Both the position numbers and the translations under genes were made by a program. From Vitrella brassicaformis CCMP3155 (lineage: Eukaryota > Protista > Chromerida): DNA of 61,197 nucleotides. Within the stretch, counting starts at the first letter, position 1; each line of letters opens with the position of its first letter. A model generated the notes under the pieces. It worked only from the letters and a program-made list of their open reading frames with translations, had not been told where the DNA came from and made no database searches. The stretch lies in contig CDMY01000514.1 in the NCBI GenBank assembly GCA_001179505.1, forward strand, positions 1-61,197, given 5' to 3'. Of this stretch, positions 52,136 to 61,197 are shown piece by piece.

Positions 52136-52297
52136 GTACTTACTGTACCCATCTCAAATAAATGAGCTGCAAGGGATTGCGCATTTTTACTTTGAGAAAT
52201 GCGGGCGCAGCGTTCTTGACACATAAAAACCTACTCCTCACGGGGCACTGAAAAATGAATCATTTTGGAAACCACCCCAACGTAAGTGATATTTTTT

Positions 52298-53610
52298 CTC
52301 CTGACACAGGGCAAACAAGCCCAGAGAAACCGCACCACGCTGTCGTCCGTCGTCTGAAGGTGATTTCCAGGCCCACACCATTGCCTGCAAAATTGTTTGA
52401 GAAGCGGATTGTGTCTCTGACAAGAGCCTTTCGGTCCCGAATCATCCAATTAGCAGCTGAAACCGCATAGTTATCTCTGCAAGGACCCGACCTGCCCACA
52501 GTTGCCCACATAAAATTCTGCCACAATGGGGCGGTGGTATGTCAAAGGAGTCACATCAAGAAGTTCTCCGTTTTTCGTCTCGCTTCGTTCTTCCAGGTCT
52601 TTCAGTGGTAAATATCTGGGCTCTCCACTATGCCACCCTGCGCATGCCTTTTCTGTTGCTGCCAGTCCAAAATCGATGTGTGCGTGGGGCCGATGGTTGG
52701 TGCCCCGGGAAGGCTTAAACTATGCGAAGGTGAGACCCGAAGGGCCGAGCCGAGCCACGAGTAGCCAGTGATTTGACTCTATGTAGAATGAAACTCTGTC
52801 CCACCTGCGCGGACATCTATTCACGCGAAGACGAAAAAATAGAAACGAAGGACAGTGAAGAATCATGCGGACAAATTACGAGTACAAATGCCTCAACACA
52901 CGCGCAAGCCGGAGGCGTCACGTGTATGAGCTATAGACACCATAAAAAGCAAAGATCGGCACACAGAGCGAGACAGACCCTGTCGCGGCCATGCTCGCAC
53001 GTACATTCGCGGGGTCGACATAATGAACGCGTTACTGCTTACACCCCCAACCGTGGGCGGCGGCTGAGCCTCTGGAACACTCGTTCGGCATTGACAAAGC
53101 CGGCGCCTGTCACACACAGAGAGATGACACTGAGATGGGCCAGGCCCTCCGTATTCTTCTGCTCAGCTGCCTGACCTGTCTTAGAGTCAAACCCTTCGTC
53201 AAACTGGGCTGTAGCGGGATCTGGATCAGCACAGAGAGAGCAATACAAGCCTCACCCCGACTGCACATGGGCACCTCGACTGCACATGGGCACTGACCGT
53301 TCATATCGTCAGCTGTTTCCATCACCAGTTGCTGAATCTCCTTTGGCCTGAGTGCTTTGTCGAAGTCTAGCATCAAGCCTGCCGGCAGAGGAACAGAGGT
53401 GCGTCGTTTTCTGATGGGGTGGACTTGTCTCACTGACCTGCCAGTCCGGCGATGTGAGACGCTGCCGCTGTGCTGCCACGGAAGTCTGATGATTCACTCA
53501 AGCGCACACACTACACGTGCAGCCACTGGTGCGCTTGACGCCTGAAGTACTCACTTGAGGCCCCACTTATACGACAGACACACACAAAAAAAAAACACAC
53601 ACAGAGCCAT
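52298..53610 (+). repeat. Copy A of a ~1.3 kb diverged segmental duplication (copy B at 59763-~61030)
   Basis: Colinear similarity from CTCCTGACACAGGGCAAA through the last exons of the peptidase-like gene, with many substitutions and indels. Confidence 0.9.
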
Positions 53611-56346
53611 AGATAATCGGTCGTCCAGGCATCGTTCTACGCCCGTTCGTGCGCTCACTATAATCTCGTCTTGGTACCTGAAGCGAAATTTGCCGATGAG
53701 CGTGTCACCAAAAGCGTGTCGGTCGTTTTCGTACCATCAGGCCCTATGAAATTTGGTCGCATTCGAGCTTGTGGCGGGGTGATGCGCCTGCCTTGTGCAT
53801 CAAAGGACTTTTGGAACGCACCTGCACGCAGCCCACCAGATGGATACGCACGCTCTTCTGGCTCTTATACTTGCCTCGCGAAGAGCTGCGTCTGACTTTA
53901 GCTGGCGCGGTCCCGAACGCTGGGGTGCTGTTGTAGAAGGCGGCACCTACGCTCGACGCGCCAAGGGCATTCACTCTTCCGAAGCCGGAAACCACACGGC
54001 TAGGCGGCGCGAACTTTGACAGGTTCTGCGCCAAAGTCCCGTCACCAAGATCAGGGTTGACGAGCGCGATCACACCCGGGTCTGGCCCCGGACTGAGGAG
54101 GCACAAAGAAAGGAAAGGGATGTTTGTGTGTTTTCTCGTCATCCTCGGGACAGATACCGACACCGACTCACTCGATTCCCAGTGGTGGGATGAACTTGCC
54201 CACTTTGATCGTAACGTCCGTGAAGGTGTCGGAAAACAACGGCGAAATCACTTCGATCGGATCGTTATTCCTACTCAAAAGGAGAAATAGAAACACACAA
54301 GTGCCTTTTGACGACTCGCACATATACAAGCACCTGTTGTTTTCGGTCGCCGCAATAAGAAGCTCGCCATTCTTGTCAAAGACGAGGAGATCCAAGTCGG
54401 TCTGTGCCCCCACACCACCAACGCTCTTGTACTACAGAACAGTCAGACAGAGAGAGAGACAGACAGACAGCAGACAGACCACACCGTGGCTCTTCACCCA
54501 CCGGTGACTTACATTCTGATCCCACTGAAGGATCAGGTCCAACGCAAAGCCCCCCATATTCTCCACGAGGGTCACATTCAGTGAGGTGGAGTTTGTGGCG
54601 CTCCACACGTGAAACTCGTACGTGAAGATCGCGTCCTCGTATGTCGTGAAGTCGACGGTCTCACGTAAGCCCGAAGAACGGAAGGGCTCCCAAAACCTGC
54701 ACAAGGATTTCCGTCGAGATGCGTTCACCCCTTTTCCCCTTGACCACCTACCCCCTGTCTGCATTGTCCCCATGCGCCGCAATGTACGAGACCCCCGACG
54801 TACGAGCGACATTGTCGATTGCCTTTTCGACCACGCCAGGAGCGAAGAAAGGTCTGCAGTAGCCAGGCAACCAGAGCCTGCTGCTTTCGTCTGGTAGGCG
54901 AAAGAAGTGGATACTCGTAGTAGGACTGCGAAGAAGTGTCGTCCACGATGACTTCGCATTCTGTCTCTTTGGCAAGCCGCTCGATGCCTGCACAACAATG
55001 ATTGGCTGGCTGGTTGTTGTGCATCAATTGCATCACGTCGATCACCTGTCGCAAGGCTAGCCTCTCCCCTAGCGGATGAATGGAACACGAATTTCGGCAG
55101 ACCCGGAACCTACATGCATATGGATTTCATTTTCAAAGCCATCATGACCTGCAGAAAACGGTTACAACATCGTAAATCAGCTCCATCATGCCAGTGCCCT
55201 ATAGCAAGTCAGAGGACACATGGAGCGGAATGCCATCCGTGACCACTGTATACTCTTCCGTGTACCCGTGCGGCGCACAGGAAAAAACAGTTCTGGACAA
55301 ACAAGTACATAATACAAATCAACCCATTGGGCCCACCTACTCCCTTCTCCGCATTGGTCTTACCTTCAACGCTTCCACTTTCCTCGGTAGTTCACACTTC
55401 TGCTTAAGATCGCCTCCATCGTGACTGTCAGACAAGACGCCTGCAAGAGTCAGATAAGCTCATACTCCGTGTCGACCTACTGACTCGTTGCTCCACCAAC
55501 CGATGCACTTGAGGGATCTGCCGTCCAGTGGCCGTCCGTTGACATTGTAGGTGCGTCTCACCACGTCGGTACCCATCGCCCTATCGCCCTGCGACACCAC
55601 ACGCCGGCTGCAGTCACGCTGCTGTCTTGGAGCATCTCCCGTATCCCTTCGGTGGCCGCGCATCGGCCAGCGGCTCGTCGTTCTGACAGCGTGAACAATT
55701 GAAATCCCTTCGACATCTAGCATGCGTCCAATCGAATCATATCTGTGTCGACAGGCAACGCGTGTGACCAGATGAGAGGCGCAACCGCATCCTTTCTGTA
55801 TCCTTCGTCCTCACGGCAGCATCCCCGAGACGATGCGTTCGTAACGGACCAGATCTCGCATGCCCAAGGCCCGTAGCGTTGCCTCGAGCGTCTTCACTCC
55901 TGCCTTCTGCTTGATGGTCACGTCCACATAGACGCCCTCCGGAGTAACCCTTGTCCCCGTCGCACGGGAAAACTCGGCCAGCTTCGACGGCGAGCGGAAG
56001 AGGCCCCGCCAGCGGTCGAAATTGGAGCCAGCCAGGACACCCACTTGGGCTGGGGAATCGAAGTCGGTGAAGGGGTCGCTGACGTCATTGCCCTTTGTCG
56101 CTCCGTGCAGACGCTACACACAAAGACAAAGAGAAAGGTAGATGCGTACGGTCCGCATCATGATGTCAGTGCTTTTCTCAGCCCCTATACCTGCTCCCGT
56201 GCTAAGAAGTGCAACGTGACCAGGATGGTGTCGATGCCAATTCTGGGCTTCGTGAATCGTTTGAGGTCGTTCCGAATCGAAGAGGAGTCGCCCTCAAACG
56301 ATTCAGAACCACAAAACCAGAGAACCACAAACAAGGTCAAGCGCAT
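53039..56346 (-). CDS. Secreted bacterial-type S8/S53-like peptidase homologue (copy 1), probable pseudoprotease
   Basis: Signal MRLTLFVVLWFCGSES, prodomain, then VVSQGDRAMGTDVVRRTYNVNG, CIG|VLSDS, GMMELIYDV|VPG, IVDD...EPFF...AIDNV...SYIAAHGDN, VGAAFY, RPNFIGPDGT, FRGSTAAASHIAGLA, METADDM...GFDSKTG|AGFVNA; stop at 53039. Confidence 0.85.
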
Positions 56347-56473
56347 ACTTGGTAGCACTTCGCGGAAAGGTGGTGTGAAATAATAGTACGCACCAGATTT
56401 GCACCTTCCTCGACACACTCTTTGACGTAGAAGTACTTGTTCGTCTCCTTCGTGTCGCCCTTCTCGAAGCACG

Positions 56474-59382
56474 ATGCCCTTCAGGCCTGGTTCGCCTCAG
56501 ACCATTGTTACGTTTTTTGTATGCCTCGTCGCTGGGGCGGATGGTCAAGGCCTCGCCAAGAGCATCCCGTCGGTCGTACGGCGCCTGACGAGCCTCCCGT
56601 CGCAAGTGGACACTCTCCTTGTGGATATCTTTGCTGAGGTGGGATGGAGAGCCTGTCGGACTGCTTGCCAAACTTGTCCCCCTTCCTCGTTGTGCAGCTT
56701 ATATACGAGCGACAGAGGAAGGCTGGGCGGAACCAAACGTCAGACGGACGATGGCACGCCAAACTCAGGAAGTTTCAGCAGCAGGGCGTTGCTGCCGCAA
56801 AGGGAGGGATCTATGTGGACATCGCGACGGACGCTGCAGCGCTGCAGAAGAATGGCGGCATGAAAGGGTTGTTAGAGCATTTGAGACGAATCGGCTTGCG
56901 AGAGGTGTCCATTCACAAGCACATGCTGTCAGGGCTCTTGCCATATGACAAGATCGAGGCAGCGGCCAGCACAAAAGGGGTGAGAATCATGCGAGCGGTG
57001 TACCTGCGTCATCGTCCTGCGCTGAGGGAACCAAAGGCGGGTCTCGTGCAAAGCGAAGGTGAGGTGCTCCAATGCTGCACGGTGGATAAGGCAAAGCGTG
57101 TGACGTCACAGGTGATAGGGCGATGGGTACCGACGTGGTGAGACGCACCTACAATGTCAGCGGACGACCAGTGGACGGCAGATCCCTCAAGTGCATCGGG
57201 ATTCTCTCAAGTGTTTCTGTCAGCGCCTTTGCCGTCGAGGCACTGCGGTACGGCCAGGCGATGCCAACACACGATTGCCTTTTCTTTTTTTCTCCTTTTG
57301 CTGCTGTGTTCAGGGGCTCGGGTGATCTGCCGGACAAAGTGCGGGCATTGACGGGCTTCGATCTGAAAAGTAACTTTACATCGACGGTGAGAATATGCAG
57401 TGTACGGTAGGGCACATCTCAGGTGTGCCCGCGGTGTCTGCAGAGCCTTCAAATGATGGAAGTGATGTTTGACGTCGCCCCCGGCCTACCCGAATTTGCC
57501 CAATTCACGGCATATGGCGGCCAAGCTGCGATGGTCAATGGCATCAAGAAACTCAAGGAGAAGGCTGGATGCTCAATCTTCGTCGACGACGGTCGCACAT
57601 TCCTGACGGAACCGATGTTCCAGGTTCGGCGGGCCGACAGGCACAGACTCAATCACCCTCCTGTGATGGTGAGATGTGTGGCCTGCACAGGATGGACGGA
57701 TCACGCAGGCCGTTGATAGTGTGACAGCGGACGGCACCGCATACATTGTGGCCGCAGGGGATGCCAACGAGTTGAGAGTGCATTGGTGCACCTGTTCATC
57801 CATCCATCCCCTCCTGTCTGTCTGTCTGTCTGTCTGTGCCTGGCTGAAGCAACGGGTTGTTCGAAAGGTAGACGACCTTGAGAGCTCTCAACGGCAAATA
57901 TTTGTCGCCTCGCCGTCATCGATGCGCGTGACAGGTTCAACAACTCAGGGATCCGAGAGAGGGTCAGGATTAAGGCAAGGCGGCCTGACCTGTATTCCAG
58001 ATATGCGCCCCGTTTTGATTTCGGTACGCGTGGACGAATGCGAGCATCGTGCATACAACAATGCACTCTGTTCTGTGTATGCCCCAGCGAATATTACGTA
58101 TGAGTGGCACCGGTTTGAGCTCAATGGGAAGATCGAGCTTCCGCTGAAGACGTTGCCGTACTATGGTGGAAGAGACTGCTGTCCAGGTAGCGTAGCCACT
58201 ACTTCCTCAAGGCGCAAATCACTCTTCGCCTTTCTATGTGATGGACAGGGCCCATCGTACTTAACTGGGTGGGAAGGAGAAATCATTCGTGACTCTGTCT
58301 TGCGCGTGTGTCTGTATCAGGACCAGCCCTATTTCTCCGTGACGGGAGATCGCGGTGCAACAACTGATTTGGATATTATCGTGATGACCAAAGATGGTGA
58401 CGTGGTTGGCCGCTCCATCTCAAACAACGTGGGAGGTGACCCGATTGAAGTCACGGCGGGCGGAGGACTGATAGTAAGCAAGGCGAGAGAGGGCTGAGAT
58501 GATTCTGTCGCTGTTGTCTCTTGTGCGTGCGATACATACCCTCAGTATATGTATCGTCCCGGGTATGACCGGCTGTTTCTTCGGGTGGGCAAGAAGGTGG
58601 AGGGCAGAAGCGGGTATGTGATTGAATGCGGCGCTGCCGGCATGACTCCCATGTACAACACTTACTGCAGCAATGCACCCGACCCCTCACATATCGGGTT
58701 GCTGTTTGGCGACGACTTCACCAATGTGCCCGCCGGTCCCACCATCTACGGGTATCCACGGGCTGGCTTGCCAATTGCTGAGGATGCATGTGGTCTTGAC
58801 TTACGGCATCGTGTGGGTGTGGCCAGGCGTGCCGCTGCGAAAGGAGCCATTGCCGTGGGGTCGAGCTTCTACAAGGGCACGACGCGATTTGGTGTGGACC
58901 CTCCCCTGATTCGCAGCACTTCGTCACGAGGCAAGAACTGACTGATTCTCTTGAGGGCGCTGAATTGGTCGTTTCGTTCAGGGGTCTTTCCAATTCTGCT
59001 TGACACGAAGGGCGACCGCACTGAGCCGAAGCTTCGCAGCACCCCAGCTGTGGTCGGACCTGATGGGGTGTCAACCAACGAAGTGGGTTATGGGGGGGGC
59101 TTCACGGGCACAGCATCTTCGGCGTCGCATGTTGCTGCCCTGGCTGCGCTTTTGAGGGACTTCGATCGCACGCTGACGCCCGGGCAGATCAGATCCATTC
59201 TGACGCGGACCGCAAGGGACATGAATGATCCCGAGACCAGAGGATTTGACCAAGGAAGAGATAATAAGACGGGTCAGATACAGCTCGTCAATTCGAGACA
59301 AATGCACTTACTGAAATGGCCTGCAGGCTTTGGATTTGTGAACGCACCCAGGGCATTCAACGAGCTCGCCACTCGCAAGTGA
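56474..59382 (+). CDS. Secreted bacterial-type S8/S53-like peptidase homologue (copy 2), probable pseudoprotease
   Basis: Hydrophobic N-terminus (IVTFFVCLVAGADG), prodomain, GLVQSE|GDRAMGTDVVRRTYNVSG, MEVMFDVAPG, IFVDD...EPMFQ|DGRITQAVD...YIVAAGDA, KGAIAVG, PAVVGPDGVST, FTGTASSASHVAALAAL, RTARDM...GFGFVNA; stop at 59380-59382. Confidence 0.88.
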
Positions 59383-59762
59383 ACGTTGAAATCTGTCTAC
59401 TCACTCAGTGTTTGGATTGCCATGAGTCCCCTTGTCTCTAATATCTGAGATCACTGAACCTTCTCCTGCGTTCATTAGGTAGTGTCACGTGTAGATTTCT
59501 GTTCCCTACTCTTACATACAAAGCTTTGTCGCCTTCTCTCTTTGCATACAAAATTTTTCCGCTGTGTACCGTTGTCGGTATCTGTACCGATCGCTGCTTC
59601 GACAAATTGCTAACACACGTGCGTGTTGTGTGCGTGTCTGCGTTTGTATTCCTACATTGGTATAAAGATGGTTCTTCCCTCGTGTGGAATTAACAGAAGC
59701 AAAATGTTCAACACAGTGAGATATCCGTTGCTCCCAAACGGCCAACGCACATGGTGGTTTTG

Positions 59763-61030
59763 CTCCTGACACAGGGCAAAGAAGCCCAGAGAAACCGCAC
59801 CACGCTGTCGTCCGTCGTCTGAAGGTGATTTCTAGGCCCACACCATTGCCTGCAAAATTGTCTGAGAAGGGGATTGTGTCTCTGACAAGCCTTTCGGTCC
59901 CGAATCATCAAATTGGCAGCTGAAACCGCATAGTTATCTCTGCAAGGACCCGACCTGCCACAATTGCCCACATAAAATTCTGCCACAATGGGGCGGTGGT
60001 ATGTCAAAGGAGATACATCAAGAAGTTCCTCGTTTTTTCTGAGTCTCGCTTCGTTCTTCCAGGGCATAGTGGTCTTACAGTGGGCATAGTGGGTAAATAT
60101 CTGGGCTCTCCACTATGCCACCCTGCGCATGCCTTTTCTGTTGCTGCCAGTCCAAAAAATTCGATGTGTGTGGGGGGCCACTGGTTGGTGCCCCGGGGAG
60201 GCTTAAACTATGCGAAGGTGAGGCCCGAAGGGCCGAGCCGAGCCACGAGTAGCCAGTGATTTGATCTATGCAGAATGAAACTTTGTCCCACCAGCATACG
60301 AAACGAAGGAAAACGAAAAATAGAAACGAAGGTCAGTGAAGAAGCATGCGGACAGAGTACCAACACAAATGCCTCAAACGGCGCAAGTCACATGTATGAG
60401 CTATAGACACCATAAAAGCAAAGATCGGCACAGAGAGCGACACAGACAGTGTCGCGGCCATGCTCGACATAATGAAGGCGTTACTTATACCCCCGACCGT
60501 GGGCGACTGCTGAGCCTCTCGAACACTCGTTCGGCATTGACAAAGCCGGAGCCTGTCGCACACAGAGAGATGACACTGCGATGGGCCAGGCCCTCCGTAT
60601 TCTTCTGCTCAGCTGCCTGACCTGTCTTAGAGTCAAACCCTTCGTCAACCTGGGCTGTAGCGGGATCTGGATCAAGCACAGGGAGAGCGATACAAGCACC
60701 ACCCCGACTGCACATGGGCACTGACCGTCCATATCGTCAGCTGTTTCCATCAGCAGTTGCTGAATCTCCTTTGGCCTGAGTGCTTTGTCGAAGTTTAGCA
60801 TCAAGCCTGCCGGCAGAGGAACAGAACAGAGGTGCGTCGTTTTCTGATGGAGTGGACTTGTCTCACTGACCTGTCAGTGCAGCGATGTGAGACGCTGCCG
60901 CTGTGCTGCCACGGAAGTCCGACGATTCACTCAAGCGCACACACTACACGCGCAGCCACTGGTGCTCTCTCACTCTGTCGTCAAGACACTTATACGACAG
61001 ATACAAACCAGACACAGAGCCATAAATAAT
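59763..61030 (+). repeat. Copy B of the ~1.3 kb segmental duplication
   Basis: Colinear with 52298-~53610 at an offset of ~7.46 kb; similarity stops near 61030. Confidence 0.9.
60485..60920 (-). pseudogene. 3'-terminal fragment of a third peptidase-like gene
   Basis: Keeps FRGSTAAASHIAAL, DKALRPKEIQQLLMETADDM, GFDSKTG|SGFVNAERVF. The acceptor that is CAG in copy 1 reads CGG here (~60919-60921), and upstream homology to copy 1 ends by ~61030. Confidence 0.7.
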
Positions 61031-61197
61031 CTGTGCGAAAAGGCCGGTGAGGACCTTTCCTGTACTTAGCTGAATAGAGGATCTGCTGGGCGGTAAGTCC
61101 CAGAGTAAGAGTGCTTTTACTTGAATAAGACCGATGGACTGGCCAGTCAGTCAAAGTTGTTTCTGTCCATGTATGGCATCATGAAGGGTGGTCAACA

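Follow-up and report, generated by a model that had tools for sequence, protein, structure and literature searches.

An ancient, divergently transcribed pair of probable secreted pseudoproteases of the subtilisin fold in Vitrella brassicaformis

The window analyzed here is the 61,197-nucleotide stretch of contig C514 of Vitrella brassicaformis CCMP3155, near one end of which lie two divergently transcribed, intron-rich genes and the remnant of a third copy. Copy 1 (53042..56346, minus strand) comprises 18 exons and corresponds to the 685-aa public model P0152, which is identical to the exons read in the window, while copy 2 (56474..59379, plus strand) comprises 16 exons and codes for 657 aa (CEM19527.1, P0151). 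GT/GC-AG borders flank every exon of both genes, the exon map contains zero internal stops, and the 34 exons together are free of stop codons and frameshifts. The start codons, at 56346 on the minus strand and 56474 on the plus strand, are separated by a 127-bp spacer (56347..56473), presumably a shared bidirectional promoter together with the 5′ UTR region. This head-to-head layout, with the two ATGs so close, fits the co-expression suggested in the original prediction and supports that suggestion to that extent. Copy 1 codes in order for a signal peptide, a prodomain and a subtilase fold that carries a large beta insert, and both proteins are probably secreted, judging from signal peptides that were read by eye. 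Spliced versions exist on short JGI contigs: P0001 on one of 1642 nt, P0006 on one of 2575 nt. However, P0006 combines stretches of copy 2, of copy 1 and of sequence resembling the fragment, and this mosaic makeup leaves it weak as evidence that copy 1 itself is transcribed.

The third copy (59742..61034, minus strand) is a partial duplicate of 52277-53621, i.e., of the last four exons of copy 1 and about 760 bp of 3′ flank. Its exon equivalents lie at 60918-60871, 60806-60726, 60666-60622 and 60552-60488 (minus strand), the first of which repeats the G-S-T-A-A-A-S-H motif of copy 1, and its homology ends within an intron at 61034, 163 bp short of the end of the contig. It is 85% identical to the copy 1 region over 1378 columns; when gaps are left aside, the exons are 94.6% identical, the introns 90.7% and the flank 91.4%. 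At the first acceptor site AG has been replaced by GG, and most of the differences in exons are non-synonymous. This segment is a decaying, dead 3′ relic without function, not a third gene, and the cluster that had been proposed at this locus is thus reduced to two full genes and a truncated duplicate.

Copy 1 and copy 2 have long evolved apart, since their amino-acid identity is 39% and few intron positions are common to both (about 3 of 15-17); their third-position identity is 38%. In a blastn self-comparison, the segment 57096..57199 of copy 2 (plus strand) is 92% identical at the DNA level to 55500..55604 of copy 1 (minus strand, inverted), whereas coding sequence outside this tract is 49% identical between the copies. 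Likewise, sliding codon identity peaks at 94% over residues 176-205 versus about 50% elsewhere. This 105-bp tract, which covers the block from G-D-R-A-M to K-C-I-G where the mature domain begins, is a probable product of gene conversion.

Both proteins are confidently modeled by AlphaFold (mean pLDDT 82.9 and pTM 0.88 for copy 1; mean pLDDT 85.5 and pTM 0.89 for copy 2), and both models match many S8 structures with a Foldseek probability of 1.00, as expected of the subtilisin alpha/beta fold. The structure prediction and alignment against subtilisin that had been proposed as a check superposed residues 170-651 of the copy 2 model on residues 1-275 of subtilisin BPN′ with a Z of about 32 and an rmsd of 2.1 Å (VIA-align), about 253 of 275 residues being aligned at about 21% identity. 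At the level of sequence, Pfam PF00082 was found above its gathering cut-off of 21.8 bits in the last large exon of copy 2 (25.3 bits), in P0001 (29 bits) and in P0006 (24.2 bits), the match being confined to profile positions about 231-288, the C-terminal third of the profile. Compared with subtilisin, roughly 190 residues are inserted between the positions of the Asn and the Ser, and the loop that leads from helix to strand behind the His position is shorter by about 10 residues. In the copy 2 model, strands and helices alternate over the predicted prodomain, and pro-subtilisin-type structures can be aligned with the model from about residue 40 or 91 onward.

The family to which the two genes belong is a large bacterial-type clan-SB (subtilisin-fold) family that counts at least 22 Vitrella loci, the pair included. 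The 20 other loci that were fetched are nearly all canonical, with a first Asp (LSDSF), an Asp-Glu pair (DEGRAM) whose Glu occupies the position of the subtilisin His, an Asn (SAGN), a His (GHANA) and the nucleophile Ser (GTSAAAPH). When 286 proteins of the family were aligned by HMM, these residues were conserved in 230/242 (D173), 240/244 (D206), 237/244 (E207), 251/257 (N289), 265/278 (H438) and 273/285 (S525) sequences, so that the D206-E207 pair is 97-98% conserved. The same motifs define a bacterial “S8 family serine peptidase” group (SQGD / LSDSF / DEGRAM / VDD..EPMFQDG / SAGN / GHANA / GTSAAAPH), with proteins from, e.g., Oculatella, Scytonema, Coleofasciculus and Hymenobacter. These bacterial proteins and the 20 or more Vitrella paralogues are full-length homologues of the pair at 30-44% identity and share its domain order and non-catalytic motifs. 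However, of the residues in this motif set the pair lacks D-E, N, H and S, all of which are retained by its close Vitrella sisters (L015-L019, P0010).

Both copies deviate from the family at D206, E207, N289, H438, S525 and P529, and copy 2 additionally at D173. Copy 1 retains the first Asp as D237, but has A266/R267 at the Asp-Glu pair, D353 at the Asn, R524 at the His, S610-T611 in place of the family Thr-Ser, and S615 in place of the Pro. Copy 2 has S209 at the first Asp, S244/T245 at the Asp-Glu pair, D329 at the Asn, R509 at the His, A587 at the Ser and S591 at the Pro. The absence of the canonical nucleophile, and the exact codons concerned, had been correctly predicted: at a column occupied by Ser in nearly the whole family, copy 1 has a Thr (ACA, 53469..53471, minus strand; F-R-G-S-T-A-A-A-S-H) and copy 2 an Ala (GCA, 59113..59115, plus strand; F-T-G-T-A-S-S-A-S-H). 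When aligned to solved subtilases, the Ala of copy 2 faces the nucleophile Ser of mirolase (G-T-S), and G-T-S stands at this site in 120 of the exon's 150 best database relatives. Copy 2 also reads I-L-S-S-V-S in place of the family V-L-S-D-S-F, which bears out the predicted loss of this Asp and is not a splicing artefact, because both flanking introns show good GT..polypyrimidine..AG signals. The loss was also found to be wider than first noted, the Asp-Glu pair, the Asn, the His and the Pro that precedes the motif His being replaced in both copies.

Several lines of evidence place these substitutions at the catalytic set of the fold, as judged from alignment and predicted secondary structure. 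The S-A-G-N motif falls on the A-G-N of 1r6v, 1v6c and 9ues in profile alignments, and in the copy 2 model a helix begins at residue 245 and a strand ends at residue 208, matching His64 and Asp32 of subtilisin, respectively. One relative, P0067, carries H-G-T at the position of the Glu, and among non-Vitrella sequences the Ser is lost in 3/4 of those without the Glu versus 1/235 otherwise (Fisher 7e-6). Read against subtilisin BPN′ and Carlsberg (S8A), the Asp-His-Ser triad is represented by D / R / T in copy 1 and by S / T / A in copy 2, and the oxyanion-hole Asn (N155 of subtilisin) by Asp in both. By residue content, then, essentially the entire catalytic machinery is gone from both copies. 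Having clear homologues in an enzyme family while their catalytic residues are substituted, the two proteins answer to the definition of pseudoenzymes, and the original description of the full genes as intact, intron-rich, apparently secreted and non-catalytic by their residues holds.

The “S8/S53-like” label initially given to these proteins is reasonable. On the one hand, the parent family shares with the sedolisins (S53) a Glu at the site of the subtilisin His, and the Asp at the oxyanion position of the pair (A-G-D) is the sedolisin state; the 13-residue spacing from this Glu to Ala-Pro is presumably also the same in kumamolisin and in the family. On the other hand, the family differs from sedolisins in that its E-G-R-A-M motif has no Asp at +4 from the Glu and its oxyanion residue is Asn, not Asp. 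The pair itself does not have the Ser-Glu-Asp triad of sedolisins, since R or T stands at the Glu and T or A at the Ser, and Pfam detected no Pro-kumamolisin activation domain in the window exons, P0001, P0002, P0006 or other relatives. Similarly, the PPC-type inserts that had been proposed were not recovered: Pfam found no PF04151 in the window proteins, and the insert lies within models whose best match in the fold search is the architecture of Csp proteins.

Indeed, the top Foldseek matches of both models were the Csp proteins of Clostridioides difficile, i.e., the pseudoproteases CspA and CspC together with the protease CspB (PDB 4i0w, 6mw4, 9pr8, 9pr9), with E values of 1e-16 to 1e-13, TM scores of 0.39-0.56 and alignments spanning about 570-696 columns. 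These matches are taken to reflect a common predicted architecture, namely a prodomain, a subtilase core and an inserted beta domain. CspC and CspA resemble the pair in being conserved subtilase folds with substituted catalytic residues; they act as a heterodimer of two pseudoproteases (PMC12880746), which parallels the arrangement of the two genes here. Moreover, restoring the triads of Csp pseudoproteases did not restore activity (PMC7200643). Nevertheless, identity is just 9-14% in the structural alignments, so the pair is not of the same subfamily, and no Csp protein was among the best sequence matches to PDB listed. The Csp proteins belong to the spores of Firmicutes, are intracellular and go back to a triad of the His type, whereas the pair is encoded by intron-rich eukaryotic genes with signal peptides and derives from a Glu-type family.

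In the family tree, copy 1 and copy 2 are sisters (SH-aLRT 96) nested in a Vitrella-specific clade (SH-aLRT 97), on long branches (0.85 and 0.92 versus a median of 0.36). The scenario of an acquired peptidase duplicated once into the present pair is contradicted by this nesting and by the at least 22 Vitrella loci, nearly all of which are intact. A horizontal origin of the parent family as a whole is plausible: outside Vitrella, every one of the nearest relatives that has a source name comes from bacteria, although one MMETSP transcript (P0035) also falls in the family and the deep branches of the tree are not resolved.

Comparison of the two copies, another check that had been proposed, yielded a dN of 0.73-0.75, a dS of at least 2.1-2.4 and a dN/dS of about 0.30-0.36 or less, as expected under purifying selection; with dS saturated, this ratio is an average over the whole history and is blind to recent relaxation. 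On these sequence-based measures the pair is maintained by purifying selection, and so does not consist of pseudogenes, because dN/dS is low, the frames are intact in 16 + 18 exons and the models are confident. That the two genes are functionless, as plain pseudogenes in decay or as products of over-optimistic gene modelling, is accordingly most unlikely. Their long branches, the loss of all catalytic residues and the clearly dead duplicate next to them would suit such decay, but the exons have stayed open with canonical splice sites despite saturated synonymous divergence, spliced cDNA-like sequences exist, and 70/95 (copy 2) and 68/95 (copy 1) of the family-conserved positions are kept (72-74%), versus 77/95 (81%) in the intact sister paralogue P0010.

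Very unlikely, too, is a rewired hydrolase in which the Thr of copy 1 or the adjacent Ser would serve as nucleophile, assisted by the new Asp or by a His of the insert. The G-S-T of copy 1 does keep a hydroxyl side chain at or beside the nucleophile position; the Asp at the Asn, the Arg at the pocket His and a His at family position 314, independently kept, suggest selection on the cleft; and the sedolisin-like oxyanion Asp in both copies would leave room for altered chemistry. Against this stand the Ala of copy 2, its missing first Asp and the absence from both copies of the Asp-Glu pair, whose loss goes together with that of the Ser in dead relatives that arose independently. The failure of triad restoration in Csp proteins further indicates that such scaffolds easily lose competence (PMC7200643). 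There is a small chance, finally, that the proteins are non-catalytic but act singly, e.g., each as a structural or adhesive wall protein, or as a decoy or inhibitor that, its own prodomain still attached, would titrate away the substrates or the inhibitors of the active paralogues. The layout would then be a by-product of inverted tandem duplication, which yields divergent promoters automatically, and the low identity and scarcity of common introns agree with long separate evolution. The gene-conversion tract argues the other way insofar as the loci still interact at the DNA level, as does the presence of a pseudoprotease heterodimer among the nearest structural matches (PMC12880746), neither being proof of a protein complex.

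We therefore regard it as likely that copy 1 and copy 2 form an old, divergently transcribed pseudoprotease pair. The pair descends from a catalytically intact member of the expanded Vitrella clan-SB family; in its lineage the active site was dismantled, but prodomain, subtilisin core and large beta insert were all retained. Some changes are common to both copies (Asn to Asp at the oxyanion position, His to Arg in the pocket, Pro to Ser beside the motif His), others separate (the Asp-Glu pair and the nucleophile Ser, and the first Asp in copy 2). The proteins would enter the secretory pathway through their N-terminal hydrophobic signal; being unable to cut their own prodomain, they would stay bound to it or be trimmed by an active paralogue, and the remodelled substrate cleft could bind a peptide or protein ligand instead of cutting it. 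The single 127-bp bidirectional region would drive both genes, and therefore the two proteins are probably made together. By their sequences, they belong to a known general class of conserved non-enzymes and, going by the gene layout and the Csp analogy, they may form a complex and thereby modulate the active paralogues or the substrates of these.

Vitrella brassicaformis is a photosynthetic protist related to the apicomplexans, and the assembly that holds the present contig (C514) comprises 72.7 Mb in 1064 contigs. An exact-sequence look-up identified the plus-strand gene of the candidate pseudoprotease pair as CEM19527.1 of strain CCMP3155. Mapped onto the DNA, the public model of this gene (copy 2; protein P0151) extends from 56474 to 59379 and contains 16 exons coding for 657 amino acids, and that of its minus-strand neighbor (copy 1; protein P0152) extends from 56346 to 53042 and contains 18 exons coding for 685 amino acids. 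The start codons of the two genes are divergent and lie 127 bp apart, the stretch between them being presumed to act as a promoter region common to both copies. Both proteins carry a short hydrophobic N-terminus which, read by eye, is typical of signal peptides and suggests that they are secreted. All introns are of the GT-AG type except one GC-AG intron per copy, found at the equivalent site after S-S-S-R-G. Only about 3 of the 15–17 intron positions, including that of the rare GC-AG intron, are common to both copies; this suggests that the duplication is old and was followed by extensive intron turnover, with heavy gain or loss. Sequence searches were carried out with single exons, full-length work relied on the public models of P0151, P0152 and P0010 (CEM22657.1, a catalytically intact sister paralogue in Vitrella), and exons were concatenated only to map coordinates, compute dN/dS and build the tree.

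The full-length relatives of these proteins are mostly bacterial or metagenomic and share 30–44% identity with the Vitrella proteins. Those with a named source, i.e., cyanobacteria, Bacteroidota, Planctomycetota, Chloroflexota and others, are annotated as “S8 family serine peptidase.” The family is very large and recognizable by the motif series S-Q-G-D, V-L-S-D-S-F, D-E-G-R-A-M ... H-D-V-A-P-G, V-D-D ... E-P-M-F-Q-D-G, S-A-G-N, G-H-A-N-A and G-T-S-A-A-A-P-H. Among 286 family sequences aligned by HMM, the conserved positions include Asp173 (230/242), Asp206 (240/244), Glu207 (237/244), Asn289 (251/257), His438 (265/278) and Ser525 (273/285).

Measured against this family, both window genes have lost nearly the whole catalytic set, which supports and extends the pseudoprotease reading of the original prediction. 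The codon coordinates and residues that it had given for the nucleophile were exact: an ACA (Thr) codon at 53469–53471 sits within G-S-T-A-A-A-S-H of copy 1, and a GCA (Ala) codon at 59113–59115 sits within G-T-A-S-S-A-S-H of copy 2. In alignments, the Ala of copy 2 falls opposite the nucleophile Ser of solved subtilases such as mirolase, and G-T-S occupies the nucleophile motif in 120 of the best 150 of 1239 relatives recovered by a full phmmer scan with the copy 2 exon; together, these observations place the Thr and Ala codons at the nucleophile position. Accordingly, family Thr524-Ser525 reads S610-T611 in copy 1 and T586-A587 in copy 2. Asp173 is kept in copy 1 (D237) and replaced by S209 in copy 2, where I-L-S-S-V-S stands in place of V-L-S-D-S-F. 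This loss had also been claimed from the sequence, and it is real: mis-splicing is ruled out by the canonical, strong signals of both flanking introns, and no alternative in-frame exon supplying an Asp was found in the frames around that exon. Asp206-Glu207 is replaced by A266-R267 in copy 1 and by S244-T245 in copy 2. Three changes are common to both copies, namely Asn289 to Asp (D353 and D329 in copies 1 and 2, respectively), His438 to Arg (R524 and R509) and Pro529 to Ser (S615 and S591), which makes it probable that these alterations predate the split of the two copies. The remainder of the scaffold has been largely spared. Among the 95 positions conserved in at least 90% of the non-Vitrella family members, copy 2 retains 70, copy 1 retains 68 and the intact P0010 retains 77, and the positions missing from both copies mainly belong to the catalytic set.

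The catalytic set that was lost is itself unusual. No conserved His was found at the position of subtilisin His64 in the 286-sequence alignment, Asp-Glu being present there instead, and four lines of evidence (predicted secondary structure, motif order, an H-G-T-bearing relative and co-loss statistics) place Glu207 at the position of His64. AlphaFold predicts that residue 245 of copy 2 (the Glu207 equivalent) starts a helix, that residue 209 (the Asp173 equivalent) immediately follows a strand, and that residue 587 (the Ser equivalent) lies two residues into helix 585–603; this is the subtilisin arrangement, as expected if Glu207 takes the place of His64. The order and spacing of the family motifs presumably agree with those of the subtilisin sequence as well. 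One relative, P0067, bears H-G-T exactly at the Glu207 position. Outside Vitrella, Ser525 is lost in three of the four sequences lacking Glu207 vs. one of the 235 sequences with Glu (Fisher 7e-6), and the dead relatives devoid of Glu207 have Asp173 or Asn289 changed too. In the profile alignment, the family S-A-G-N pairs with A-G-N, the oxyanion motif, in three subtilases of solved structure. The 13 residues that separate Glu from the following Ala-Pro correspond to what we take to be the sedolisin spacing, that of kumamolisin, which makes the “S8/S53-like” label of the original prediction apt.

Scans of Pfam and NCBIfam exon by exon gave no match outside the last large exon; over its N-terminal two thirds, the family has diverged too far for the S8 models. 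Sequence searches of the PDB, using either a single exon or the family profile, returned no solved structure of the parent family, the alignments being confined to the Asn and Ser regions, and hhalign of the family profile against one canonical Vitrella subtilisin fragment (L024) aligned the Ser motif alone, with a probability of 1.6%. No description of a Glu-type catalytic variant was found for an S8-annotated family, and this Glu-for-His family, with its Asn oxyanion residue and G-T-S-A-A-A-P-H motif, possibly represents, judging from its sequences, a catalytic variant intermediate between S8 and S53. Ser has also been lost independently in the metagenomic or bacterial members P0110, P0123 and P0201 (also P0025, P0062, P0066 and P0131), which, where visible, lack Glu, Asp and Asn as well; pseudo-members thus recur in the family outside Vitrella.

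The predicted structures are of the subtilisin fold. AlphaFold models built with ~117 homologues reached a mean pLDDT of 85.5 and a pTM of 0.89 for copy 2, and of 82.9 and 0.88 for copy 1. Subtilisin BPN' is matched along its whole length (1–275) by residues 170–651 of the copy 2 model, ~253 residues being superposed with a Z-score of ~32 and an rmsd of 2.1 Å. We read the alternating strand/helix block upstream of this fold in the models as a putative prodomain. An insert of ~190 residues, mostly beta, separates the Asn and Ser positions; the PPC-type inserts originally proposed were not borne out, family-profile scans detecting no PPC domain in the window proteins. Pseudoenzymes are common, and subtilase-fold pseudoproteases such as CspC and CspA are already known, so the Vitrella pair is not a new principle. 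The best Foldseek matches of both models are CspA and CspC of Clostridioides difficile and CspB of Clostridium perfringens (E-values of 1e-16 to 1e-13), and include the heterodimer 9pr8 formed by CspA and CspC, both pseudoproteases; sequence identity between the window models and the Csp proteins is only 9–14%. The Csp pseudoproteases illustrate that scaffolds of this type can take on regulatory roles, and also that restoring the triad need not restore activity (PMC7200643).

Genes without a catalytic set could be plain pseudogenes, a reading that the substitution pattern of the pair argues against. Copies 1 and 2 share 39% protein identity, 49% identity in aligned codons and 38% at third positions, with a dN of 0.73–0.75 and a saturated dS of at least 2.1–2.4. 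The resulting dN/dS, a check that the original prediction had named, is at most ~0.30–0.36 and not near 1, and together with 34 intact exons it speaks for maintained genes. One 105-bp tract, at 57096–57199 on the plus strand (copy 2) and 55500–55604 on the minus strand (copy 1), is 92% identical and spans G-D-R-A-M ... K-C-I-G at the start of the mature domain; its sequence is probably the product of gene conversion between the inverted paralogues. Spliced versions of both genes occur on short JGI contigs (P0001, 198 aa/1642 nt; P0006, 518 aa/2575 nt), which are most simply transcript-derived since the genomic genes are ~3 kb with introns. P0006 is a mosaic, the N-terminus of which corresponds to a copy 2 exon (56923–57063) and the body to copy 1 (55741–53042), the parts being probably joined at the exon that holds the 92%-identical tract; a short part matches variants of the fragment described below (60937–60488). 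P0006 is judged less likely to be a third full gene than a chimera of transcript assembly or an allele of another strain.

The third “copy” of the cluster, near the contig end, is a partial duplicate. The stretch at 59742–61034 copies 52277–53621, where copy 1 has its four 3′-most exons and ~760 bp of downstream flank; identity is 85%, gaps included. A gene cut by the contig end is ruled out, as homology stops within an intron, 163 bp before that end. Exons (94.6% identity) are hardly better kept than introns (90.7%) and flank (91.4%), the first splice acceptor is now GG, and ~10 of 13 exon differences in a hand count of the exon alignments change an amino acid. Taken together, the intron-internal end, the similar identities, the GG acceptor and the non-synonymous changes identify the fragment as a dead relic. 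The ORF-like repeats at 52277–53041 and 59742–60487 are the duplicated 3′ flank (91% identical) and not separate genes.

The pair belongs to a large Vitrella family. At least 20 further loci of the parent family, all matching most of the family profile, are present in the genome, and nearly all of them are canonical at L-S-D-S, D-E-G-R-A-M, A-G-N, G-H-x-N and G-T-S-A-x-A-P-H; exceptions are few and fall at exon junctions. Loci were fetched from contigs C252, C688, C908, C502, C323, C249, C366, C520, C385, C907, C938, C275, C200, C130, C295 (four loci), C554 and C964, and further matches lie on C458, C616 and C497. The family has expanded to at least 22 loci with very different intron loads, some being almost one open frame vs. 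16–18 exons in the window genes. In a quick maximum-likelihood tree (LG+G4, SH-aLRT; 102 rows, 467 columns), in which 20 Vitrella loci were represented by merged HMM-anchored exon fragments as a crude approximation, copies 1 and 2 are sisters (support 96) nested in a clade of Vitrella genes from C295 and C554 (support 97), on terminal branches of 0.85 and 0.92 vs. a median of 0.36. The deeper branches are weak, so the tree does not decide between single and multiple bacterial acquisition. No other named eukaryote was seen in the best-match lists of the family. P0035, an MMETSP transcript coding for a complete 687-aa member with canonical G-T-S-A-A-A-P-H, bears on the question of horizontal transfer, its source being either another microbial eukaryote or bacterial contamination of the transcriptome.

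The pair thus couples a subtilisin fold and a divergent layout with loss of the catalytic set and long-term purifying selection. The dead copies would be unable to self-process their prodomain, their remodelled cleft may be used for binding, and the two proteins might act jointly, by analogy with CspC:CspA (PMC12880746). A more ambitious proposal, which we consider improbable as a whole, would make the pair a secreted heterodimeric module, the eukaryotic counterpart of CspC:CspA, sensing a ligand or gating the ~20 active paralogues, themselves a third subtilisin-clan catalytic type (Ser, Glu in place of His, Asn in the oxyanion hole and Asp where subtilisin has it) bridging S8 and S53.

On the level of annotation, loss of the catalytic set corrects the automatic label “subtilisin” that CEM19527.1 and its neighbor bear in public databases. 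On the level of biology, the pair is a very clean eukaryotic case of pseudoproteases: within one lineage of a ~22-gene family, the scaffold was kept and the whole catalytic set lost, the dead state has been long maintained, and the two genes presumably share a 127-bp promoter region. The Glu-for-His set of the parent family is a more general and more unusual outcome than the pair itself and, if confirmed biochemically, would amount to an additional catalytic variant that stands between subtilases and sedolisins.
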